Source of the DNA: Epiperipatus broadwayi
Lineage: Eukaryota; Animalia; Onychophora
Assembly: GCA_028023455.1 (NCBI GenBank)
Contig: JAQFVV010000006.1
Location: 17,980,001-18,044,000 of the forward strand
DNA length: 64,000 bases
Direction of reading: 5' to 3'
Shown: piece after piece, positions 6,061 to 61,545 of the stretch
How positions within the stretch are numbered: position 1 is the stretch's first letter
Layout of the letters: every line of letters starts with the position of its first letter
Notes under the pieces: model-generated
Told to the model about the DNA's origin: nothing
Databases searched by the model: none
Seen by the model: only the letters and a program-made list of their open reading frames with translations
Program-made: the position numbers and the translations under genes

Positions 6061-7039
6061 TCAAATCTTATAAGGTGTTTTAATAATATATGTGGTCACT
6101 GACCTAAGAAACTTTTAATAATAGAAAATGAGGTAAGATGAGATTTTGGAATTATTTTTAAAAGATAAGAATATTAGAACTTTATTATAAATTTTGCAAA
6201 ACCAAAATTCATAAAAATATGATCCAATTATATCACTTGGAAAAATTATCAATTAAAACAAATCAATTTATATTTCTACACTAAAGTAAAAAAAATCTTA
6301 AAAAGATTTGAAATCTGTTATACCAATTCAATTTACAAACATCCTGCACATTTCCTGACTGGGGATTGGAAGATCCCAGGACCGATTCTAACATTCACAG
6401 TTTCTGTAGCTTGAACTTCTTATGAACACTTGAGCAATAAAGCCATATGCATTTTGTTTTTAATTTATAAGCATGACTTTAGCATGTTTGTATAAATAAA
6501 TGCATTGTATTCACAACTCTGCCAATGATTTTTCTTCACATGCAGGTATCATGTGTGGTTCAGAGTAGTAATAGAGAGATGCACTCTAAAAAGATAAATA
6601 TTCCTGCTACTCAGATATAAAAAAATCAGTTTAATCGAGTGCTGTGCTTGGGCTGTTATATTGATACTCATATGTCACATGACTGTCTGAACAATGGCAT
6701 TTGTCACATGCTCCCACAAAAAGTATAATAAAGGCAGAATGCCAATAGTCTGTTATTCAAAATTATCCAAAAATATTTCAAAGGTAACCACTAATCTTTT
6801 ATAATAAATAAATCAGTTTACATACATTTACAAATAAATTTTTAAAAAACCATTTAGTTAATACTTGTAAATTAATAAGTCTAATTATAATGAATTGCTT
6901 GTTTTTTCCCCCCATCTTAGCAGACTTAGAGTTCATAACAAAGGGTAAAAAATCTATTATTTAAAAAATCCACAAATTCCAAAAAGTCATGAAATCAAAG
7001 ACTTTGGATTAATGTTATTTTTAAATGTAAGCCAATAAA

Positions 7040-7200
7040 TATCACATGATCACCACTTTTAGGCCACAAGCCAAAAACTAGTCTGGGGATATTGGATGAG
7101 TAGGCACTAGATGGGAATTTTATGCACAAGCCATGGCATCCATTGATTACTCTAGCTTGCACTCAGTGGCACTACTGTATGGAGAGTTTTGCCTATTTTT
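7040..7200 (+). mobile_element. Family A fragment starting inside HHR stem II
   Basis: GGCCACAAGCCAAAAACTAGTCTGGGGATATTGGATGAGTAGGC...GGAGAGTTTTGCC. Confidence 0.75.
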
Positions 7201-7829
7201 AAATGTAATATTGAAAGCTAAATAGGTTTGTCTATATCAATCCAATCTCTTCAGTAATATATCTTTCAAATATTAAATTTTTATCAATCTTCCATTATTA
7301 AAATTGTGTTGTACTTGTTATTTTAACTTTTGTTTATTTAATCTATTTTGGGTGTGTTTGTTTTATTTTTCCTCGTTTATTCTATATATTTTCAAATTAT
7401 TAAATAAAATGTATATCATTATACGTTTATTATTCTACTCAGCTTATCTATGAACAAAGAACCAAACATTTATATATTCACATTTTGTATTAACTCGTAC
7501 ATTACTACTCATATAGTAATAAAAATAATTATTCTGTAACTTTTCTTATGATATCCATACTAATATGAGATGAGTTTACTATCCTAATATGAGATGAAAG
7601 CCACTGCACAGAAGCTGATCTGGAATGTGAGTATGGAAGTACAATCTGGTAACTTTTTAGATTTGTAGATAGTGGCACTGAAATGAAAGGGTAGAGTGAA
7701 TTATTGCCTCTCAAAATATTTATAACTAAATTAATCAAAATTATTGTTTTGCAATCATTTTGTTCAGCTTACTTCAATCATTAAGGTTTCCACAAAGACC
7801 CTGTCATTATAATGATTATCTATTGAATA

Positions 7830-8390
7830 TTAAACCACTAAATATCATATAATCACCATTTTTATGCTTGTTCATAACTGTTATTAAAACAAGCAAAACT
7901 CTCCATACAGTAATACCACTCAATGCAAGCCAGAGTAATCAATGGATGCCAGAAGGCTTGTGCATAAAATCCCTATCTAGTGTCTACTCATCCAATATCC
8001 CCAGACTAGTTTCTGGCTTGTGACCTTCATCAGTGAGGAGCCTTGGATCTGAGAGCACAGCACCTAGTGCAACCCTCCAGAAGCCACCTTTTATCTCTAT
8101 TTAACTACAAAACTATGAGAATAAAATTGAAACACAATAATATTTTCAATCTAAGCTCATTAGCCTATATAATCATATAGGTCTGAACTCAATTCAATAC
8201 CCATTCATTTTGGTGTCTTTATTACTTTAATAAGCATAGTCATCACTATCCTATTAGGCAGGATTGGTATTAAACCACTAACATCACATGATCACCATTT
8301 CTTATGCTTGCTTGTAACTGTTCTGGTATCCATTGATTATTCTGGCTTGCACTGAGTGGCACTACTGTATGCAGAGTTTTGCCTGTTTTA
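7830..8390 (-). mobile_element. Family A element, full monomer plus inverted 3' segment
   Basis: Collinear with 48833-49290; CATCACATGATCACC-like motif recurs ~437 bp apart; 8322-8390 is an inverted copy of ~7880-7950. Confidence 0.85.
7990..8048 (-). ncRNA. Type I hammerhead ribozyme (family A), intact
   Basis: AUCCAAGGCUCCUCA-CUGAUGA-AGGU CACAA GCCA-GAAAC UA GUC^UGGGGAUAUUGGAU. Confidence 0.87.
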
Positions 8391-12289: not shown

Positions 12290-12650
12290 TTAAATAATCC
12301 ACATCCAGTGCCTTTCAACTCAATATTGCCAGACTAGTTTTTAGCTTATGGCTTTCATCAGTGAGCAGCCTTGAATTTGAGAGCAGTGCATCTAAATTTT
12401 TGGATCTAATGAAGCTCTCCAGCATCAACTTTAACTGTAAAGCTAACAGCCCAAATTGAAACACAATAATATTTTCAATCCAAGGTAATTTACTTTATAG
12501 CCATACAGATTGAATCCAGTTCAGTATCTATATATTTTGTTTTTTTAAAACTACATTTACCATTATACGTTGTCTAAGATTGTTATTAAACCTTAAAACA
12601 TCATATAATTGCCATTTCTTTATGCTTACAGACATTATTAAAACAGTACC
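12290..12650 (-). mobile_element. Family A fragment, diverged
   Basis: CCAGACTAGTTTTTAGCTTATGGCTTTCATCAGTGAGCAG and downstream ACACAATAATATTTTCAATC block. Confidence 0.7.
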
Positions 12651-13450: not shown

Positions 13451-14049
13451 GTTGCACATAAGAATATTTCTAAATGAATTACTTGAAAATTGAATACTCA
13501 TTAGAATTTCAATACAATTTTAAAAATAAAGAAATTTTAAAACAATGTTTTGAATCTCTTTAAAATAATCAAAATGTAAGAAGTATACAATGAATTTTAG
13601 GACTATACTTTAAATGGTGTAGATTTTACTTTTTGGTTAATATTTTTCTATGACTTCATGCCTTATGTTGATATTTTATATTGAAAATTATGAGATCATA
13701 ATGCCATTTCACTCAGTATTTAAGTGGAAGAGTTTACAAAAAATATTGAAGAAAAAAAAAATCATTCCATCAATTAATCAGTAAGAAAATTTTCTTCATT
13801 GAAAAGACAATATTTTTGAAAGTAGGTTAACATAAAAGCAAAAGAAATGTATACTAATATTATATGCCAAGCAAAATGGTGATTTTGTTTCATAAAACAC
13901 TTGTCTGCAACAAAATTGTTTTTTTGTATTTTTCAAAATAATATAAACTATGAATGCATATTTAAATAAAGTTTGATTAGAACCAAATTACATGTAGTAT
14001 ACAGTTAGAAACTTAAAATAGAAGCAAATTTTTATATAGTAGTGTCTCC

Positions 14050-14605
14050 CAGTCCAAGCCTTACTAATCAATGGATACAAGAAGATTGTGCATAAAATCT
14101 CTATATAGTGCCTATTCATCCAATATCCCCAGACTAGTTTCTAACTTGTGGCTTTCATCAGTGAGGAGTCTTGAGTCTGACATCTTAGGATGTAACACAA
14201 CCCTCCAGCAGTCATCTTTGATCTACTTAGTTAATTATAAAACTATAAGTTCAAGATGAAAAAATATTTTTAATCCAAACTCATTTGTTTGAACCAAGTT
14301 CAGTATCTGTACATTTTGATGCCTTTGGTTTTTTTAAAACAAGTCATCATCATTGTATGGGCAGGATTGGTATAATGATCAACATTTCCTGTGCTTACAC
14401 AAGCTGTTAAAACAGTAATAAACTCTCCCAGTGCTATTCAGTGCAAGTCTTAGCAACCAATTAATGCAAACAAGGCTTGTGCATAAAATCCTTATCTAAT
14501 GCCTATTCATTCAAAATTGCCAGACTAGTTTCTAGCTTGTGGCTTTCATCAGTTTGCTCCTGTTTTAACAGCTTATGTAAGCATAAAAAATGGTGATCAT
14601 GCGCT
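14050..14605 (-). mobile_element. Family A partial tandem (two HHR cores 391 bp apart)
   Basis: AGACTAGTTTCTA(A/G)CTTGTGGCTTTCATCAG at 14131 and 14522. Confidence 0.8.
14118..14176 (-). ncRNA. Type I hammerhead ribozyme (family A)
   Basis: CUCCUCA-CUGAUGA-AAGC CACAA GUUA-GAAAC UA GUC^UGGGGA; stem II AGC/GUU. Confidence 0.75.
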
Positions 14606-15739: not shown

Positions 15740-16000
15740 TCCATCTAGTAAAAGCATTAGTAAACTTATGGATGCCAGATGATTGCACTCAATAAATACT
15801 GTCCATGCTGTCCTATCCAATGTCCCCAGACTAGTTTCTAATTTATGGTTTCATCAATGAGGAGCCTTGGATTTAGAAACAGTGCATCTGGACATTTAGG
15901 ATTTAAAGCACATTTTCTCGAATAGCTATCTTTTATTTCTGTTTTACTATTAAGCTATCTGCTGAAATGTAAAATATATTGTTTTCAATCTAAGCCAACT
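15740..16000 (-). mobile_element. Family A fragment
   Basis: ATCCAATGTCCCCAGACTAGTTTCTAATTTATGGTTTCATCAATGAGGAGCCTTGGAT. Confidence 0.7.
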
Positions 16001-17640: not shown

Positions 17641-18409
17641 TAGTTAAAACCCAATGTGGTGGCACTTAATAACCAATAATAATCACTCTGTGTTGTTTGG
17701 TGCAGAGGTAGAAAGATCAATCTGCTGTTCAAGATCTATAGATCACAACCCAACTTCAACATTTCTTATGAACTTTTGTGTAATAAACTAATAGTTACTA
17801 CTAATAAATCTTTATTAATTTGAAATTTATAATCATGATTATCATGTGTCATATATGATCTAATAGAGTGGTATATAGATATACTCAAGACTATAGATTG
17901 CAGTCAGTTCTGTGATGACACCATGAGAGTCAAATCATTCAATTAAATAGTCATATATTTGGATACATTAACAATCATTCAGAAATTTGGCTTAATTATT
18001 TAAAATGCAATTTTTAACCGAAATAAATGTTCCCACTTTTTAAACCTACTTTGATAACTTTCTTAAATATCATAATTAATCCTTTATTCTTGTGATAAAA
18101 TTTAATCCCACAAACCTCTGAACTTCAGTGTTGCATTGAAACTGCTACTATACAAAAAAGTTAATTTTAAATGAAGTCCGACTTGAGACATTTTTTTCAA
18201 TTTTGAGAATTTAAATTTTTTTTATTTGAGCCATAGAAAGGTTGCCATTTGTGTCTAATTTAACTGTGAAATGTATATGTTGAAAATAATATTGTTTAGT
18301 TATATATGTGCATATATATTAAAATTTGGCAAAGATCAAAATAGGCAAAGATAGCAGCTTTCTGAACCTTGTTTTACCTTTTAATAAAATTAATTAGATA
18401 CCCATTTAA

Positions 18410-18620
18410 ACCATTAAGCATCACATGATCATCATCTCTTATACTTGAACAATTGTTTATAAACAAGGCAAACTCTCCATACAGTAGTGCCACCCTGTGC
18501 CAACTAGAGTAATCAATGGATGCCATTAGATAGGGATTTTATGCACAAGCCGTCTGGTATCCATTGATTACTCTGGTTGGCACAGGGTGGCACTACTGCA
18601 TGGAGAGTTTGCTTTGTAGA
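18410..18620. mobile_element. Family A-derived fold-back (no HHR)
   Basis: ~65-bp arms 18461-18527 and 18553-18618 of the GGCAAAACTCTCCATACAGTAGTGCCACC...CAATGGATGCC segment. Confidence 0.8.
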
Positions 18621-22124: not shown

Positions 22125-22550
22125 AATGCACAAAGGCAAAACTCTCCATACAGTAGCACCACTCAGTGCAAGCCAGATGAATCAATGGATAGATCTATAG
22201 GACTATACAAGCTAATGAGCCTGAATTAAAAACATTATTGTCTTTTAATTTTGGACTCAAAGCTTTATAGTTAGCTAATAAGGTAAAAGGTGGCTGCTGG
22301 AGGGTTGCATTAGATCCTAAAATCTAGTTGCAGTGCTCTAAGATGCACGACTCCTCACTGATAAAAGCTACAAGCTAGAAACTAGTCTGGGGATATTGTA
22401 TGAGTAGGCACTAGATAGGTATTTTATGCACAAACCTTACTGCATCCATTGATTACTCTGGCTTGCATTGAGTGGTGCTACTGTATGGAGAGCTTTACCT
22501 TTGTGTAAATATAGAGAATAACGATCGTGTGATATTTAGTAATTTATCAC
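22125..22550 (+). mobile_element. Family A element with 5' inverted segment; HHR core CTGATAA (G8A)
   Basis: CTCCTCA-CTGATAA-AAGCTACAAGCTA-GAAACTAGTCTGGGGATATTG at 22351-22399. Confidence 0.8.
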
Positions 22551-26633: not shown

Positions 26634-26691
26634 TGTCCTAGCTCCTCACTGAAGAGAGACATAGCACGAAACCAGTCTGGGGATGGGGATA
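26634..26691 (+). ncRNA. Type I hammerhead ribozyme related to family A, decayed stem II
   Basis: UGUCCUAGCUCCUCA-CUGAAGA-GAGACAUAGCAC-GAAAC CA GUC^UGGGGAUGGGGAUA; same stem I architecture as family A. Confidence 0.65.
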
Positions 26692-26904
26692 ATTCTAGTT
26701 AAAAATGATTTGAATGCTTACTCTTGTAGCATTTATCATAAAAATAATAAAAATACGCTTGTTTAAAGCTATTACTATGCTTGTTATATATATATAATAT
26801 TTCCAGGAGCTTCCACATAATAAAAATATAATAGCTAAATAGCTAATGTTTCAGTATAATAAATACTTTTCTCAAAGCTTCTTCTTTCTCAAATCATAAG
26901 AATG

Positions 26905-27450
26905 TATGTGGAGAGATTTAAAATCATTATTTTTTCTTTTCTTTTCTCCTCATTCCTGAATTCTATTGGTTTTGAAGATTTAAAACACATTTAATTCTCC
27001 AATAGCTTTTTCCAAATATTGTTAATTTTCTTTAATTTATACTTTTCATTTATGCTTGTAGACATTTTAAACATCTCTGTAGCTTCCCTTAGCAGTCTCT
27101 GGTCATATTGTTCAATTTTTGCCAGAATATGTGCTTTATTAAAATTGATTAGTTAATTTAATGTGTGAATAATTGGCTGATGAATTAGATTTTTTTCTAA
27201 TTGCCAAAATGTGTTCTTGCTTTCTTATGTTTATTCTATGATTGGTCTATCCAATGTATGAATGTAAACACATTTTATTTGGAATTTAATATACACCATG
27301 ACATTCCAAAGGAATTTTATCTTTAGGATGTGGAAATACTTCATTAATTTTTTTAAATATAAGTATAAATTGTGTGGATATTATTTTTCTTTAAAAGATG
27401 GCTAATTTCATCAGTTACTACCTTTATATTTGGCAGAACAGTCTTATGAT
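26905..27450 (-). mobile_element. Penelope-like element remnant, GIY-YIG endonuclease region (frameshifted, stops)
   Basis: Minus-strand translation KTVLPNIKVVTDEISHLLKKNNIHT...PHPKDKIPLECHGVY*IP...SYIG*TNHRINIRKQEHILAIRKK matches the PLE LPY...KDK...GVY...YIG.T motif order; ~26790-26905 is an inverted copy of ~27445-27560. Confidence 0.85.
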
Positions 27451-27799
27451 TTGAGAAAAAAGAAACTCTGAGACAAAGTACTTATGATTGAACTGAAACA
27501 TTAGCTATTTAGCTATTATATTTTTATTACACAGAAGCTCCCAGAAATAATACTATGATTTTATCCATGAGAAATATATATATATATATATATTGTACCC
27601 TTGCTTACTTGTTAACATTGAAAAAACTCTCTGGCTAAACTTAACTAAGTCACACTTCATTTTTAACATATAATATCTAATAAAATTATGATTTAAAATA
27701 ATTTATCTTATTTAAATAATAAAGTAAAAAAATAATAAAAAAACAACAAATTAAATACTAAGGTTCAAATTACATTCCCAGCTCTAGCTCATTATTTAC

Positions 27800-36184: not shown

Positions 36185-36490
36185 GATATATCACATGATT
36201 ACTATTTCCTACATTTATGCAGGCTGAAAACATCGTGTTTTCATAGCTTTATAGTTAACCAAATGGGTAAAAGGTGGCTGCTGGAGAATTGCATCAGATC
36301 TTAAGAACTAGGTACAATGCTCTCATATCCAAGATCCATCACTGATGAAAGTCACAAACTAGAAACTAGTCTAGAGATGTTGAATGAGTAGACAGTCATT
36401 GGATAGAAATTTTCTGCTGAAACCTTCTTGTATCTACTGATTACTAAAGTTTTCACTGGGTGGCACTACTATATGGAGAGTTTGCTATAC
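36185..36490 (+). mobile_element. Family A element, diverged, HHR core retained
   Basis: CCATCA-CTGATGA-AAGTCACAAACTA-GAAACTAGTCTAGAGA at 36336-36377. Confidence 0.75.
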
Positions 36491-38869: not shown

Positions 38870-40280
38870 TAGAATAGATTAATACTCTTATTCTTCTTTA
38901 CTTTCTTTGCATTTCTTCATATATTCATATATATTGCTTATAATAACTTCTCTCATATACACTTTAATGCAAAACAATTTTTAATAAAACTTCTTTATTT
39001 TCCTGACAGTTTAAAAGGTAAAGGAAACTTGAGTTCTGATGAAGACTGCTGGACAGTTGAAACTGTCAGAAAAATAAAGAAGTTTTATTAAAAAAATTTG
39101 TTTGCATTAAAGTGTATATGAGAGGAGTTTTTATAAGCAATATATAGAATAGATTAAATATGGAAATTCATAATAAATGTAGAGGTTTGAAGACAGAAGT
39201 TCAATGATTGACAAAAAAATTAAAAATGATTAGTATATTAAACTGCAAAGAATATGCAAACATTTCTAATCATGCTCATTCTAGATCTTTATTTGATTAA
39301 AAGCAACATATGGACCTGAAAAACATCATAATATAATTAAATTCAACAATGACCCTTTTATATGATGATAGTGAGATGGAAGGAGTATTTGATCATATTT
39401 TGAATAATGATACAAAAATTGAGATGACAACATTAAGGTTATATATACATTTTATCTACTTATTTATATTTATTCAAAGATATTTGGCTTAGTGAAATCA
39501 AAACAGCTCTTTGTATTGGAAAGGCTGCAGATCCTGATAAAATATCTTGAGAGTTTTAAAATATGGTGGTGATATATTAGATGTGAATATATTGGAAATT
39601 TTAGGAATATGCTACACAATTGTAAATTTAGATGTGTTTGTTGTTCCAAATTGAAATAAATAAGAATAGTTATTGTGTAATATTATTATTTACTTCTTGT
39701 TTTCCTATGTATTGATTTCTACTTTAACATATACCATTTACAACCTTCATAAACACTTTATCAATACTTTTATTTATATCAAACTAACAGTTTTGACTGT
39801 CCTGCAGTCATCATCAGAGCTACAATATATAATATAAATAAATGATAATAATATTTATTAAATAATAGAATAAATGTTAAAGTTTATAATTATTATAATA
39901 AATAATATTTTTAAAAAATAAAGTGATATAAAATAAATTGATGTAAAATAAATATTGATAGAATTATTTTAAGAATAAAGTAATGGGAAATGATTATTTA
40001 TAATGGTCAGATTAAGATGTATATTTATTTTTGTTTATATTGTGTATTTAATTATGCATATGAATATGTGTATAAGTGTATTAATTATATAATTATATAT
40101 TTGAATATTGTAGCTCTGATGATGACTGAAGGACAGTCGAAACTGTAAGGAAAATAAAGAAGTTTTTAAGACAATTTGTTGCATTAAAGTGTATTTGAAA
40201 GAAGTGTTATAAGCAATATATATGATTACATGAAGATATGCGAAGAAAGTGAAAGAGAAGAATAAGAGAATATACTTCTG
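38870..40280. mobile_element. Family B PLE-like terminal repeats in nested inverted arrangement, with minimal HHR-like motifs at 39031-39070(+), 39781-39822(-), 40111-40150(+)
   Basis: CTGATGA-N-GACTG CAGGA CAGTC-GAAAC T GTC; ~38870-39012 inverted against ~39060-39200 and 40140-40280. Confidence 0.65.
39470..39600 (+). mobile_element. LINE fragment upstream of RT
   Basis: IWLSEIKTALCIGKAADPDKIS*EF*KYGG resembles EI..A+..GKA.GPD.I..E..K.GG. Confidence 0.55.
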
Positions 40281-40975: not shown

Positions 40976-41009
40976 AATTGGATATTGTTATTGTATGAGT
41001 CATTTTAAA

Positions 41010-41525
41010 CTATCAAACATCACATGATCATCATTATTTATGTTTAGTGGCACTACTATATGGAGAAATTTGCCTGTATGGAAACAGCTTGTGTACACAT
41101 AAAGAATGATGATCATGTAATGTTTGATGGTTGAATACCAATAGGATTATGGTGATGGTGGCTATTAAAGAATTAAAGATACCAAAAAGTATGGATGCTG
41201 AACTGAGTTCAGATTTATATGACTATACAAGATAATGTGCTTAGCTTGAAAACATTATTGTATTTTCATTTTAAATTTAAAGCCTTATAGTTAACTAAAA
41301 AGTAAAAGGTGGCTGCTGGAGAGTTGCATTAGATCCTAAGATTTAGTTGCAGTGCTCTGAGATCCAAAGCTCCTCATTGATGAGAGTAAAAAGCTACAAA
41401 CTAGTCTGGGGATATTGGATGAGTAGGCATTAGATAGGGCTTTTATGCACAAACATTCCTGCATCCATTGATTACTCTGGCCTGCACTGAGTGGTGCTAC
41501 TATGTGGAGAGTTTTGCCTGTATGA
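41010..41525 (+). mobile_element. Family A element, HHR core mutated
   Basis: GATCCAAAGCTCCTCATTGATGAGAGTAAAAAGCTACAAACTAGTCTGGGGATATTGGAT; short inverted pieces at 41010-41080. Confidence 0.8.
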
Positions 41526-48800: not shown

Positions 48801-48933
48801 TTTAAATGTTTAAACGTTGGTTAATGACATAACAAAGGCAAAACTCTCCATACAGTATGCCACCCTGTGCCAAACAGAGTAATCAATGGATGCCAGAAGG
48901 GTTGTGCATAAAATCCCTATCTAGTGCTTACTC

Positions 48934-48992
48934 ATCCAATATCCCCAGACAAGTTTCTGGCTTGTGGCCATCATCAGTGATGAGCTTTGGAT
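48934..48992 (-). ncRNA. Type I hammerhead ribozyme (family A), second copy of tandem
   Basis: Same fold; core CUGAUGA/GAAA/GUC intact, stem III loop UU instead of UA, one stem I mismatch; predicted cleavage between 48948 and 48947. Confidence 0.85.
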
Positions 48993-49388
48993 CTGAGAGC
49001 ACTGCACCTAGATCTTAGGATCTAATGCAACCCTCCAGCAGCCACCTTTTAACTCTATTTTACTACAAAAACTATGAAAATGAAATTGGAAAACACAATA
49101 ATATTTTCATTCTAAGCTCAATAGCTTATATAGTCATATGGGTCTGAACTCAATTCAGCACCCGTACATTTTGGTGTCTTTGGCTCTTAAACAACCACAG
49201 CCACCGCTATTCTATTAGGCAGGATTGGTGTTAAACCACTAAACATCACATGATCACCTCTTATACTAGCACATAATTGTTGTAAACAAAGGCAAAACTC
49301 TCCATACAGTAGTGCCACCCTGTGCCAAACAGAGTAATCAATGGATGCCAGAAGGCTTGTGCATAAAATCCCTATCTAGTGCCTACTC

Positions 49389-49447
49389 ATCCAATATCCC
49401 CAGACTAGTTTCTGGCTTGTGGCCATCATCAGTGAGGAGCTTTGGAT
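49389..49447 (-). ncRNA. Type I hammerhead ribozyme (family A), intact
   Basis: Minus strand AUCCAAAGCUCCUCA-CUGAUGA-UGGC CACAA GCCA-GAAA-C UA GUC^UGGGGAUAUUGGAU: full core, stem II, palindromic stem III (ACUAGU), stem I of 6 bp + internal loop + 6 bp; predicted cleavage between 49403 and 49402. Confidence 0.9.
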
Positions 49448-50789
49448 CTGAGAGCACTGCACCTAGATCTTAGGATCTAAATCTATTGATTACTCTGTTT
49501 GGCACAGGATGGCACTACCGTATGGAGAGTTTTGCCTTTGTTTACAACAATTATGTGCTAGTATAAGAGGTGATCATGTGATGTTTAATGACATAATGAA
49601 AGACATTGAAGCTGACATATCTGAGTCTGCACTAAGCTTAGAGCTGGCATAAATATAATACCTCTTTATCTGTAATGTACACTGTATAATATTGTATTTT
49701 TTGTTTTTAAAATCAACATACTGATACCTATTTGATCAATCCAGATTTACCTGTAACTTTTACTTTCTAGCTAATAATAAACAGATATTCCTTAATAAGC
49801 CAGTAATGGATTGTTTTTAAGGATCTCATATAGTTCAATAAGTAGCATATACATTTATCGTGAATTTGATCCAGTTCAAATGAAAATCTTAAACAGTATT
49901 TTTTTAGGAATCTTTTTTTTTCAAGTGGCCAGTCCATTGCTATCCCTAGTAATTTATTTGAGCCACATTATCTGGTTAAGTACAGCCTTCTCTTTTTTCA
50001 CTGTCCTCTATAATGTAAGGTTTTTGCTCTGAAATGAGCTTTTTAACGTTATTTACACCTTTTTTTAAATCTTAGTAAGTGACTGTTTGGATTGCTTGTA
50101 AAATGGCTATGTGGAAACAAAATATTAAGCTTGCTGTTGATTTAATATCACCCCCAAAGTTAACTCACTTTAAACTCAGCTATGACAGATGGAAATTCTA
50201 ATTCATACTGCAAAAAATCTTTTCTTTTAATAAAACAAATTTTTTTATTGATGATTTTTCATAAATTTTTTTAATTAGTTATAAAATATGGTAATTGCTT
50301 TATTGCTTTGAAGTTCATAAGAAGTTTAAGGATTAGACTGTGAGTGCCAGGATGGAACCTTTAACCTCTTGATTACTAGTTAGATACTCCACTACCTGTG
50401 CCAAACTGCGCATGGTATTAGGACAATTAAAAACAATAATAGAAAAAAATACTATAATATACTAAATATCGAAAATTAAAAAAAAAGTAGTTGTTTTATT
50501 TATTTTTTTAATTTTATATACAAAGGTTAATAAATAGATAAAAGAAAATGAACAGGATTATGAATTTATAGGCAGTTTAACTAAATCATAGTCTAAATAA
50601 CAAATGACATGGTTAATGGATGGTCTAAGCTGTTAAAATAGTGACTACATTTAATATTATCAAAACAACATTTTTTTTTAATTATGACTTTCATTGAGTT
50701 TTTTTTATATTTTTTCCAAGGATATTTAAAAATCAGTGATAAAGTTTTATTCAGTCATTTTTATGATATCATAAAAATAATATATCAGC

Positions 50790-51060
50790 TATCCGTTCTA
50801 TCTTATACAGCCGATATCTATGGCCACACACATGTAAATAGATAAATGATCTCCAATATATGTATTTCATGCTGAACCAGCACTCATCAGTTGGTCTAGA
50901 TCATGATCTGCTGGTTCAGCATGAAATTCATATATTGAAGATCATTTATCTTTTTCATGTGTGTGTGGTCATGTATATCATTGCATATGATAGAGCGGAT
51001 AGCTGAAGGGCATCTGTGTTCAAGTCCCTTATATAATTGCATCTAAACTCCAGGTACATA
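50790..51060. mobile_element. Family D fold-back element with hammerhead
   Basis: ~50790-50885 inverted against ~50909-51005; relatives at 5835-6060, 24400-24545, 57030-57470. Confidence 0.75.
50848..50902 (-). ncRNA. Type I hammerhead ribozyme (family D)
   Basis: GAUCUAGACCAA-CUGAUGA-GUGCUG GUU CAGCAU-GAAAU ACAU AUA^UUGGAGAUC; stem I 4 bp + AGA bulge + 5 bp. Confidence 0.8.
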
Positions 51061-56859: not shown

Positions 56860-57660
56860 ACAATTTATCCAAACTGCTTCGAACACTTTTTTAGCAAAAC
56901 TCTTTATTGGTACATATATACATACACATACGTTTCGACTGTCCTGCAATCTTCTTCAGAGCCAATTTATTTTAATCTCTTAATAACTGAAACACACAAG
57001 CTTATTATATGCCTGTGTCTATATATGTAATATATAGGATATATGAGCACAGACTTTCACATGAGCCACCACTCTCCACACCATCTCATAACCCTGATAC
57101 CCTTGAACACATATATGTTGAAAAGATAAATAATCTCCAATATACATTTTAGGTCAACATGGGTGTGACAAGAATCTCAGCCTCAGGGTGGCTTTTGAGC
57201 ATTCCATCATCAGATTTTCAATTGGATGGTTGAAGAGTTGGAGTGTGGAGTAGATTGAAGGTTTGGCTATCTTAATATATATCTGAGCACTTATAGCATA
57301 TATGTGTAGAGTAGTAATCTGGACCAAGTGATGATTGCTGGTTTAGCATGAAATATTTATACTGGTGATTATTTATATTTTCAACATATATGTGTTCAAG
57401 TGTATCAGGGTTATGAGATGGTGTGGAGAGTGGTGGGTCATGTGAAGATCTGTGCTCATATACCCTATTTAATCTCTTAAAAAACGTCCTGCAGTCTTCT
57501 TCAGAGCCAATTTACTTTATTCTCATAAACAAACATTTTTTTAAGAGACTAAAGTAAATTGGCTCTGAAGAAGATTGCAGGATAGTCAAAACGTAGGTGT
57601 ATGTATATATGTATAAATAAAGAGTTTTGCTAAAAAAGTGTTCAAAGTGGTTTGAATAAA
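56860..57660. mobile_element. Family C PLE-like inverted repeats with HHR-like motifs at 56925-56964(-) and 57561-57600(+), enclosing a family D fold-back
   Basis: GGCT-CTGAAGA-A-GATTG CAGGA CAGTC-GAAACGTA; 56865-56985 inverted against 57540-57660. Confidence 0.6.
57030..57470. mobile_element. Family D fold-back with degenerate HHR at 57317-57370 (+)
   Basis: ~57035-57145 inverted against ~57355-57470; ATCTGGACCAA-GTGATGA-TTGCTGGTTTAGCAT-GAAAT. Confidence 0.7.
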
Positions 57661-61159: not shown

Positions 61160-61545
61160 ATTAATCATCATCATTATCAACCATTATCAATCCACTGCAG
61201 GATGAAGGTCTCTCCAAGTTTAATCCATCTTTTCCGATCTTTAGCTTCTCTTCTCCACATCACCTCTGCACACTTTCTTATTTCATCCATCCATCTCACA
61301 TATGGTCTCTTTCTGGGTCTTTTACAAACTCTTGGAATCCAGTTTAAGATTTCAATTGTCCATCTATTATCATTTCTTCTAGCAATATGTCCAGCCCAAC
61401 TCCACTTCAGTCTTTTAATTTTTTCAATGAGGTCAGTAACACCTGTTTGTTCTCTTACCCATACATTGCGTTTTCGATCTCTTCTTGTTACTCCCAACAT
61501 GCATCTCTCCATACTTCTTTGAGTGGTTTGGAGTCTCTGTATTGC
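61160..61545 (-). mobile_element. RTE-clade LINE 3' end, young, 5'-truncated
   Basis: ORF 61177..61512 MERCMLGVTRRDR...LKWSWAGHIARR.DNRW...RPRKRP..RWMDEI...ILQWIDNG followed by (TGA)n tail. Confidence 0.9.

Follow-up and report, generated by a model that had tools for sequence, protein, structure and literature searches.

Retrozyme-like elements with type I hammerhead motifs and Penelope-type insertion architecture in the genome of Epiperipatus broadwayi

Introduction

Animal retrozymes have recently been recognised to give rise to abundant small circular RNAs, and the case for their dependence on Penelope-like elements (PLEs) relies mainly on co-occurrence and on pseudo-LTR similarity seen in Xenopus. 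Hammerheads nearly universally carry a G-C pair at positions 10.1-11.1. In the newt satellite 2 and Schistosoma Sm-alpha repeats, which are transcribed into unit-length RNAs, a weak helix III leads the hammerheads to act as dimers. The insertion signature published for PLEs comprises a partial tandem, an adjacent inverted and 5'-truncated copy, a tail at one end and a target-site duplication of variable length (PMC8557442).

The locus described here lies in a 64-kb stretch of the genome of the onychophoran Epiperipatus broadwayi (contig JAQFVV010000006.1, positions 17,980,001 to 18,044,000), which is referred to below as the window and supplies all coordinates. It had been predicted from the letters of the window to be a retrozyme-like element. 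Our analysis supports this reading: the locus belongs to a family that is mobile and non-coding, is built of tandem units and carries type I hammerhead motifs, a combination that defines an animal non-LTR retrozyme.

Results

Anatomy of the insertion

The insertion spans 760 bp (48831-49590) and holds 1.4 units. Read along the minus strand, it consists of a 110-nt inverted arm, a full 455-nt unit and 196 nt of a second unit. The full unit (unit A, 49026-49480, minus strand) is non-coding, has 40% G+C and starts at unit position 1; this position is also the preferred 5' end of arms across the family. The partial unit (unit B, 48831-49025, minus strand, unit positions 1-196) stops at the 'short' 3' terminus of the family (...GCCTTTGTT). 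The predicted head-to-tail repeat was recovered as a 168-nt direct repeat (48858-49025 and 49313-49480) with a spacing of 455 nt and 98% identity, followed by a 27-nt continuation. The inverted, 5'-truncated arm (49481-49590, plus strand, unit positions 135-244) is 96% complementary to 49237-49346 and stops at the 'long' 3' terminus of the family; the inverted segment thus exists as predicted, with a length of 110 nt in place of ∼105 bp. A 'tail' of ∼47 nt, as defined in PMC8557442 (49543-49590, plus strand, unit 197-244), is present at the right end of the insertion and missing from the other end. The flanks carry the predicted 12-bp target-site duplication, TTAATGACATAA, at 48821-48832 and 49585-49596, in which the last 2 nt of the left copy and the first few nt of the right copy are possibly element sequence.

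The longest ATG-initiated open reading frames in a unit trimer are 19 aa (sense) and 42 aa (antisense), in agreement with the predicted absence of an ORF, and a search of the unit for a tRNA-like part found none. Unit A is 3.3% off the family consensus and the arms at the locus differ by 2.6-3.6%. Judged by its distance of ∼3% from the consensus, the copy is moderately young, and the predicted youth of the element holds in a relative sense; other copies have arms 0-0.9% apart.

Two type I hammerhead motifs on the minus strand

The repeats carry two type I hammerhead motifs on the minus strand, as had been predicted, and both cores were recovered. Hammerhead A (49397-49438, core 49432-49403) equals the 36-nt consensus of the family; its core reads CUGAUGA, UGGC-CACAA-GCCA, GAAA, C-UA-G and UC, and its helix I (UCCUCA/UGGGGA) can be extended to 49385-49452. 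Hammerhead B (48942-48983, core 48977-48948) likewise contains CUGAUGA, a helix II of 4 bp closed by a 5-nt loop, GAAA and UC, with C-UU-G in place of C-UA-G. Cleavage is predicted after 49403 and after 48948, at exactly the 455-nt spacing that had been proposed. The core of hammerhead B is kept, as the original prediction stated, but two substitutions weaken the motif: a C-to-A change leaves helix I with an A.G mismatch, and the loop of helix III (CUUG) has lost its palindromic character. Hammerhead A is consensus-perfect. With hammerhead B weakened, the locus copy is likelier to be a decaying product than a source.

Both motifs contain the conserved core (C3 U4 G5 A6 N7 G8 A9; G12 A13 A14; A15.1-U16.1; H17 at the cut site). 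Their topology is that of type I, with helix I open and helices II and III closed by loops, and the strand order is helix I 5' strand, CUGAUGA, hairpin II, GAAA, hairpin III, UC and helix I 3' strand. Helix I has 6 bp. Helix III has 1-2 bp closed by a palindromic loop, as is also found in the canonical metazoan type I motifs that function as dimers (PMC4209133, PMC7229834). In an alignment of helix I, pairing is kept in 90% of the cells and two pairs are replaced on both sides, C-G by U-A, the sample being small and its sequences related. Helix II of the two most abundant sister variants contains G-C in one and A-U in the other, with G.U and A.C intermediates at ∼1 per 100. Such compensatory change lends moderate support to the predicted helices I and II.

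In place of G10.1-C11.1, this family has U-A and the most abundant sister families have A.A. The motif could be re-read as G-C plus one unpaired nucleotide on each side, and PLE hammerheads typically have one additional nucleotide following A9 (PMC4209133). The Rfam hammerhead models, the check proposed with the original prediction, reported neither motif, whether the whole window was searched at the gathering threshold, 1 kb at E<=10, or 68 nt. Since the core is present, and since RF00163 matches sister motifs elsewhere in the genome at 35-40 bits, these misses are taken to reflect the limited reach of the models where this variant is concerned. Thermodynamic folding alone does not single out the hammerhead fold (the two 68-nt motifs give z = -1.5 and -0.8), and cofolding of two motifs adds little stability.

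A dispersed family of tandem units

The element family is dispersed through the 5.6-Gb host genome. Chance occurrence of the motif was rejected: a loose form occurs 30 times in the window, where 6.7 are expected, the exact 36-nt hammerhead 4,979 times genome-wide against 0 in the control, and the wider superfamily motif 82,049 times genome-wide against 26 in the reversed control, or ∼3,000 times the control. Candidate matches to the family number at least 2,225, of which the best 30 loci are 91-96% identical, and the window contains 12 insertions of the superfamily.

Unit length is 455-456 nt across the family. Positions 1-198 form a better conserved module containing the extended helix I, the type I hammerhead and the 3' terminus, and are followed by a more variable part of 250 nt; in the same older insertions, the module is 85-86% identical to the consensus and the rest 74-78%. 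Within young multi-unit insertions the units are 0-0.9% apart, though each is ∼2% off the consensus, which fits the copying of one monomer sequence. The 455-nt unit folded as a circle has a predicted minimum free energy of -142.7 kcal/mol (z = -4.7 against shuffles) with ∼70% of its residues paired, and the circle of the consensus gives z = -6.3.

Matches to the family were found in four sequencing runs as Logan contigs, which contain no read ends, strand or circle junctions; none of the four runs is on record as RNA, and their RNA status is a guess. The module at positions 1-198 is the part that is present in runs from other species. Literature searches with hammerhead sequence strings returned no match, a weak sign that the family is unpublished. 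The suggestion that the element was possibly undescribed may hold at most for the family sequence, since the kind of element has already been described (PMC7229834; bioRxiv 10.64898/2026.07.22.740005).

Insertion architecture and termini

The family is mobile and dispersed, and its insertions are built of two head-to-head cDNA-like arms. This arrangement was present in 22 of the 26 sampled insertions with both ends in view, and in 22/26 one outer end lies at unit ∼198 (∼196-201) and the other at ∼245 (∼235-252), an offset that constitutes the ∼47-nt 'tail' (45-52 nt). The outer (3') ends of the arms are fixed and the inner (5') ends vary. Arms span from one to more than five units, and target-site duplications are 7-15 bp long, mostly 10-15 bp. 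The partial-tandem and inverted structure that the original prediction likened to PLE insertions is therefore seen both at the locus and in 22/26 sampled insertions, and this anatomy is the published PLE signature (PMC8557442).

The same features bear on the proposal of spread at the DNA level, in which the locus would be a tandem repeat of satellite type or a DNA transposon (MITE) bearing terminal inverted repeats, and its hammerhead-like strings would be incidental. Tandem units and inverted ends are indeed present, and newt satellite 2 was itself initially read as a satellite. However, the family consists of short insertions, dispersed in their thousands and each flanked by a separate duplication of variable length (7-15 bp), its motif count far exceeds the control, and the variable inner junctions and offset outer ends are not those of true terminal inverted repeats. 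We consider an origin of this sort, whether as a satellite or as a MITE, highly improbable, and rejected both on these grounds; the offset of the outer ends is ∼47 nt.

The positions at which arms begin are less favorable to cleavage. Ten of 56 arms start at unit position 1-5, eight of them without room for hidden residues, as against one of 56 near the predicted cleavage site (74-84), and every arm longer than 120 nt reads through that site uninterrupted. Many templates were therefore uncut linear RNAs or re-ligated circles, and so the insertions alone do not demonstrate cleavage. These observations can be counted toward a rival reading in which the hammerhead is a passenger or relic, and a linear transcript from unit position 1 to ∼198/245 of the same or a later unit is copied by a PLE in the manner of a SINE, with neither cleavage nor a circle. 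The non-canonical 10.1-11.1 pair, the failure of Rfam to detect the motif, and the poor or absent in vitro activity of comparable motifs elsewhere point the same way. PLE-type hammerheads cleave poorly (PMC4209133), and in Xenopus only one of nine predicted retrozyme dimers was cleaved in vitro. On the other hand, 4,979 copies keep the hammerhead perfectly, sister families retain its core and show compensatory changes in helices I and II, conservation extends to the palindromic helix III that dimers need in order to act, and the monomer circle is unusually self-paired. Related elements of corals, mussels and axolotl yield abundant circles (PMC7229834). Unit position 2-17 is, moreover, a near-palindrome, so the cluster of arm starts may mark a strand-switch hot spot instead of an RNA 5' end. 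We regard a passenger hammerhead as unlikely.

Relationship to resident Penelope-like elements

The genome contains more than 10,000 GIY-YIG candidates with open frames of up to 901 aa. Searching the RT and EN parts separately with Pfam identified RVT_1 plus GIY-YIG in one PLE frame; Pfam searches with whole PLE ORFs gave no match, probably owing to their extreme K/N/I bias. In the 3' UTRs of the resident PLEs, a minimal hammerhead-like motif is followed after ∼80-100 nt by a short end and then by a ∼58-nt tail, the layout that the retrozyme also shows. The PLE hammerhead is minimal (U3/A8), has a helix II of 6 bp and lacks loop 3.

Comparison of the unit with 30 GIY-YIG PLE loci from 7 families, a sample out of the >10,000 candidates, revealed no significant similarity (blastn with word size 7; local alignment against shuffles). 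The only lead among the sampled PLEs is a 17/20 match between the unit and the 3' end of locus L042, which was equalled by 14 of 300 shuffles. No PLE coding remnants were detected in the window at E<=1e-3 (tblastn with 11 PLE ORF pieces). The predicted Penelope RT/GIY-YIG partner is thus backed by plentiful open PLE frames, but no sampled PLE shares sequence with the unit.

PLE abundance, together with published PLE pseudo-LTRs that bear hammerheads and form partial-tandem and inverted structures (PMC4209133, PMC8557442), could suggest that the locus is a 5'-truncated fragment or solo pseudo-LTR of an autonomous PLE, with no separate non-autonomous family. Complete 455-nt units nevertheless recur head-to-tail (more than five in locus L006) without coding sequence between them, PLE protein pieces match inside no unit, and the 3' regions of the 7 PLE families not only lack significant similarity to the unit but carry the different, minimal U3/A8 hammerhead. 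This origin is very unlikely. A solo PLE pseudo-LTR was rejected on the tandem complete units and the lack of PLE similarity in the 7 families sampled.

Discussion

The locus is probably a retrotransposed copy of a high-copy, non-coding and non-autonomous animal non-LTR retrozyme, in effect a gene-less miniature PLE. We infer the following pathway for its formation. The minus strand would be transcribed through at least two units, and two hammerheads would pair via the palindromic ACUAGU of helix III, cut after GUC and release a 455-nt RNA. A host tRNA ligase of the RtcB type could circularise this RNA into a highly self-paired circle. A PLE enzyme acting in trans would then copy the circle, or an uncut multimer, from internal sites near 198 and 245, and priming from both nicked target strands would give rise to the inverted arms and the tail.

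A bolder form of this proposal is that the U-A/A.A hammerhead of the family and of the ∼80,000-motif superfamily is active only as a dimer, and that the thousands of small, complete insertions are a natural record of a Penelope RT/GIY-YIG enzyme starting at two internal sites on circular or multimeric RNA and primed from both nicked strands. The features that would make up this record are the two fixed 3' termini 47 nt apart, the preference for a 5' end at unit position 1-2, and arms that comprise from one to more than five identical units. We advance it tentatively and think it doubtful as a whole. If true, it would explain mechanistically, for the first time, both the PLE 'tail' and the rolling-circle reverse transcription of a circle made by a ribozyme.

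The family is very large and partly young, and each short insertion contains both junctions, making the PLE-type signature directly readable and countable; this should be useful for working out the poorly understood integration mechanism of PLEs. It could also be used to test the activity of a hammerhead with U-A or A.A at 10.1-11.1, a form invisible to the Rfam models. For annotation, the superfamily fills a noticeable share of the window, and standard RNA-family scans will miss such elements.

Among known systems, plant LTR retrozymes (Cervera et al., 2016, PMC4918200) are alike in being non-autonomous and in having two hammerheads that bound a non-coding RNA, which in plants circularises. 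They differ in their type III hammerheads within true LTRs, their PBS and PPT, 4-bp duplications and RNAs of 600-1000 nt, and they depend on Ty3/gypsy enzymes (PMC4918200). Newt satellite 2 and Schistosoma Sm-alpha also consist of type I hammerhead repeats a few hundred bp long, but were described as satellite or SINE-like repeats with canonical G10.1-C11.1, whereas the elements here are dispersed PLE-type insertions whose hammerheads are predicted.

PLEs (Craig et al., 2021, PMC8557442; Cervera and de la Pena, 2014, PMC4209133) have in common with the element the partial tandem, the inverted 5'-truncated neighbouring copy, the one-end tail, the variable duplication and a hammerhead at a fixed distance upstream of the 3' end. 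Unlike PLEs, the element has no RT/GIY-YIG gene, and its tail is 45-52 nt compared with the 30-40 bp reported. Its hammerhead has the canonical type I form, with C3-G8, helices I and II of 6 and 4 bp and a loop 3, in contrast to the minimal U3/A8 form of the resident PLEs, and it has no sequence homology to those sampled.

The closest likeness is to metazoan non-LTR retrozymes (Cervera and de la Pena, 2020, PMC7229834; Li, Clavereau and Pollet, 2026, bioRxiv 10.64898/2026.07.22.740005), of which the element is a good further example and not a new kind. Shared features are short non-coding tandem units with a type I hammerhead, low G+C, no LTR, duplications of more than 4 bp, a high copy number, a monomer circle with strong predicted self-pairing, PLEs with minimal hammerheads in the same genome, and a short palindromic helix III, which implies that the motif acts as a dimer, as it does in axolotl. 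With 455-456 nt, the unit lies at or slightly beyond the upper limit of the 150-450 bp reported in 2020 (PMC7229834) and inside the 51-972 bp of the 2026 survey (bioRxiv 10.64898/2026.07.22.740005). The family differs from its metazoan relatives in the U-A pair at 10.1-11.1 (A.A in sisters) that Rfam misses, and most of its copies are insertions of one to two units with inverted arms, not long arrays.

Organization of the window insertion and a recurrent insertion plan

The insertion at 49590-48831 (minus strand) is composed of three parts: an inverted arm (49481-49590; 110 nt, the reverse complement of unit positions 135-244), a complete unit A (49480-49026, minus strand; 455 nt), and a partial unit B (49025-48831, minus strand) containing the first 196 nt of the unit. 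The direct copies, units A and B, share 97-98% identity, and complementarity between the inverted arm and its counterpart is 96%. Repeat mapping reproduced the coordinates and 455-nt spacing of the original prediction, and the flanking duplication claimed there was located on both sides as TTAATGACATAA (48821-48832 and 49585-49596), bracketing the whole insertion. The inverted segment proposed at one end is present, but it is 110 nt rather than ∼105 nt long.

A search of the genome (5.6 Gb, 18,588 contigs) returned at least 2,225 candidate matches to the unit, and the insertion plan was read by mapping the unit onto the best 30 loci, which are 91-96% identical to it. Arms, each containing tandem units, are paired head to head, and both outer ends are unit 3′ ends. 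In 22 of the 26 insertions with both ends visible, one outer end is at consensus positions ∼196-201 (...GCCTTTGTTTA) and the other at ∼235-252 (...GTGGTTTAA); the window insertion, which ends at unit positions 196 and 244, fits this plan exactly. The inner junction can be at any unit position, and the target-site duplication is specific to each insertion, mostly 10-15 bp. Duplications of variable length, inner junctions at variable positions, and offset ends count against both a DNA transposon and a satellite. In the insertions of Penelope-like elements (PLEs) described by Craig et al. (PMC8557442), partial tandems are accompanied by an adjacent inverted 5′-truncated copy, and a tail of 30-40 bp is found at just one of the ends. 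The retrozyme insertions have the same structure with a tail of 45-52 nt, and the PLE-like partial-tandem plus inverted structure originally proposed is thus seen at the window copy and, as the two-terminus plan, in the 22 sampled insertions. Large inverted arms also make up the array at L031 (G000:C809:202331-205374), which is built from the ∼419-nt unit of a sister retrozyme family.

Hammerhead motifs within the unit

Every unit of the window insertion contains the elements of a type I hammerhead in the expected order: helix I 5′ strand UCCUCA, CUGAUGA, the hairpin UGGC-CACAA-GCCA, GAAA, C-UA-G, UC, and helix I 3′ strand UGGGGA. Two more stems can lengthen helix I, reaching 49385-49452; helix III is merely an A-U and a C-G pair around a 2-nt loop. 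The six nucleotides at helix III, ACUAGU, form a palindrome, a feature of canonical metazoan type I motifs that causes them to act as dimers in tandem transcripts (PMC4209133; PMC7229834). Cuts are predicted after 49403 and after 48948. Hammerhead A (core 49432-49403) matches the family consensus exactly. In hammerhead B (core 48977-48948) the core is retained, but a C-to-A change introduces an A.G mismatch midway along helix I and an A-to-U change destroys the helix III palindrome. The original description of two type I hammerheads, one intact and one with an intact core, holds. The window contains 30 matches to a loose hammerhead pattern where 6.7 are expected; a stricter pattern has 82,049 matches genome-wide against 26 for a reversed control, and the exact 36-mer of the family 4,979 against none in the control. 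The hammerhead motif is not a chance match.

The Rfam search suggested with the original prediction gave a negative result: no hammerhead model reported the unit's motif, whether searched at the gathering threshold, in 1 kb with E<=10, or in a 68-nt segment. RF00163 scores 35-40 bits on sister motifs of the same genome that have G-C at 10.1-11.1, including that of L031 (40 bits). This pair is U-A in the present family and A.A in the most abundant sister families. In PLE hammerheads A9 is characteristically followed by an unpaired nucleotide (PMC4209133), so the motif can alternatively be read as G-C with a single additional nucleotide on either side. Among sister variants, the two most frequent differ at one helix II pair, G-C in one and A-U in the other, and the G.U and A.C intermediates each turn up about once among the first 100 places listed. 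In a 12-sequence alignment, pairing of helix I reaches 90%, with C-G to U-A exchanges. Comparison of families backs the helices moderately, not strongly, because the compared sequences are few and related.

Properties of the unit and nature of the template

The absence of an ORF was confirmed, the longest in a unit trimer being 19 aa (sense) and 42 aa (antisense), and no tRNA-like part was found in the unit. The unit is 40% G+C, and its circular fold, with ∼70% of bases paired, is far better than those of dinucleotide shuffles (z = -4.7; consensus, -6.3); known retrozyme circles have the same kind of fold (PMC7229834). Older insertions are 85-86% identical to the consensus over positions 1-198 and 74-78% over positions 163-456. 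Since both parts of one insertion are of the same age, this gap reflects stronger constraint on the hammerhead-plus-3′-end module in the source lineages. In contigs from runs of four differently labelled organisms, for which the RNA label is a guess and a run search returned none recorded as RNA, module 1-198 has by far the highest contig depth, and it is almost the sole part present in the most distant organism.

All retrozyme arms longer than 120 nt pass through the cleavage site. Arm 5′ ends, which correspond to the inner junctions (L001-L030; 49480/49481 in the window), are distributed non-uniformly: only 1 of 56 starts within positions 74-84, near the predicted cut, and 10 of 56 start at positions 1-5 (∼0.6 expected under uniformity), eight of them without room for hidden residues. 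Because arms cross the cut site and few start there, the templates were multimers that had not been cut, circles formed by re-ligation, or linear RNAs with position 1 as their start. The preference for positions 1-5 marks either an RNA 5′ end, which would place a start site 78 nt upstream of the predicted cut, or a hot spot of strand switching; positions 2-17 form a near-palindrome. The insertions prove retrotransposition in the manner of PLEs and do not in themselves prove ribozyme cutting. PLE-type hammerhead motifs cleave poorly (PMC4209133), and only one of nine predicted Xenopus retrozyme dimers was cleaved in vitro, which calls for caution regarding the self-cleavage predicted here.

Age of the insertion and related sequences in the window

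Unit A differs by 3.3% from a consensus built from 42 full units (median 4.3%), by 2.6% from unit B, and by 3.6% from the inverted arm. Arm/unit divergence is 0-0.9% in other insertions (L006, L004) and 4-13% in further ones. The copy, originally called young, is moderately young. Of the ∼12 superfamily insertions in the window it is the youngest, but it does not rank with the youngest copies genome-wide. The eleven older ones (1355-1824, 7028-7201, 7830-8384, 12296-12539, 14034-14283, 14452-14553, 15815-15995, 18406-18610, 22130-22507, 36238-36483, and 41005-41519) are 72-89% identical to the consensus; several likewise combine a short inverted arm with a direct arm, and their hammerheads mostly have A, not U, after CUGAUGA.

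Other hammerhead-like motifs are present in the window. One at 50855-50890 (minus strand; CUGAUGA-GUGCUGG..CAGCAU-GAAA, with an AUA triplet) is part of a separate repeat family; a further copy is on the antisense strand near PLE loci (L041, L047). In a third family (39036-39086 and 40116-40167, plus strand; 56919-56959, minus strand), CUGAUGA is followed by an unpaired A or U, and helix II is 5 bp long (GACUG/CAGUY). A canonical-type hammerhead at 26649-26677 (plus strand), within 26634-27560, shares helix I CUCCUCA/UGGGGAU with the retrozyme family. Tblastn with 11 PLE ORF pieces (E<=1e-3) detected no GIY-YIG/RT remnant at 26634-27560 or elsewhere in the window. A 111-aa ORF at 61177-61512 (minus strand), judged by eye alone, looks like the C-terminal portion of a LINE reverse transcriptase of the RTE/jockey type; it is a remnant of an unrelated retroelement.

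Penelope-like elements as possible helpers

The genome contains more than 10,000 GIY-YIG candidates, with open frames of up to 901 aa. One 580-aa PLE frame (L054:34-1773) was blank in Pfam when scanned whole, and RVT_1 and GIY-YIG were found when its parts were scanned apart; the extreme K/N/I bias of this genome's proteins can mask domains when an entire protein is scanned. A conserved minimal hammerhead-like motif (e.g., L045 oriented 2184-2219) is located ∼300-450 nt past the stop codon in the PLE 3′ UTRs at 22 of 30 loci (L035-L064). In this motif C3/G8 is replaced by U3/A8; this covariation occurs naturally and has in vitro activity (PMC3088659). A bulged U precedes helix II, which is 6 bp long and shows compensatory changes from family to family, and there is no loop 3 (ACGU palindrome). 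The short 3′ end is 78-100 nt downstream of the motif and the long end ∼58 nt beyond, a layout common to the retrozyme, in which 118-122 nt separate the cut site from the short end and the 45-52 nt tail follows. None of the PLE families sampled has significant sequence similarity to the unit, so we infer a partner from anatomy rather than identify one. The last ∼20 nt before the short 3′ end of a family F3 PLE (L042 oriented 2243-2262) match consensus positions 179-198 at 17/20, a score equalled by 14 of 300 shuffles; this end is only a weak lead to a partner.

Relationship to known retrozymes

In sequence organization the window element, originally termed retrozyme-like, has the structure by which metazoan non-LTR retrozymes are defined (PMC7229834), and it agrees with a recent proposal that these retrozymes are non-autonomous PLE derivatives (bioRxiv 10.64898/2026.07.22.740005). 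The family is of interest as a clean system in which to study how PLEs integrate and to assay a variant hammerhead. Its distinguishing features are a unit at the top of the size range, the 10.1-11.1 variant, a longer tail, and a very regular two-terminus anatomy.
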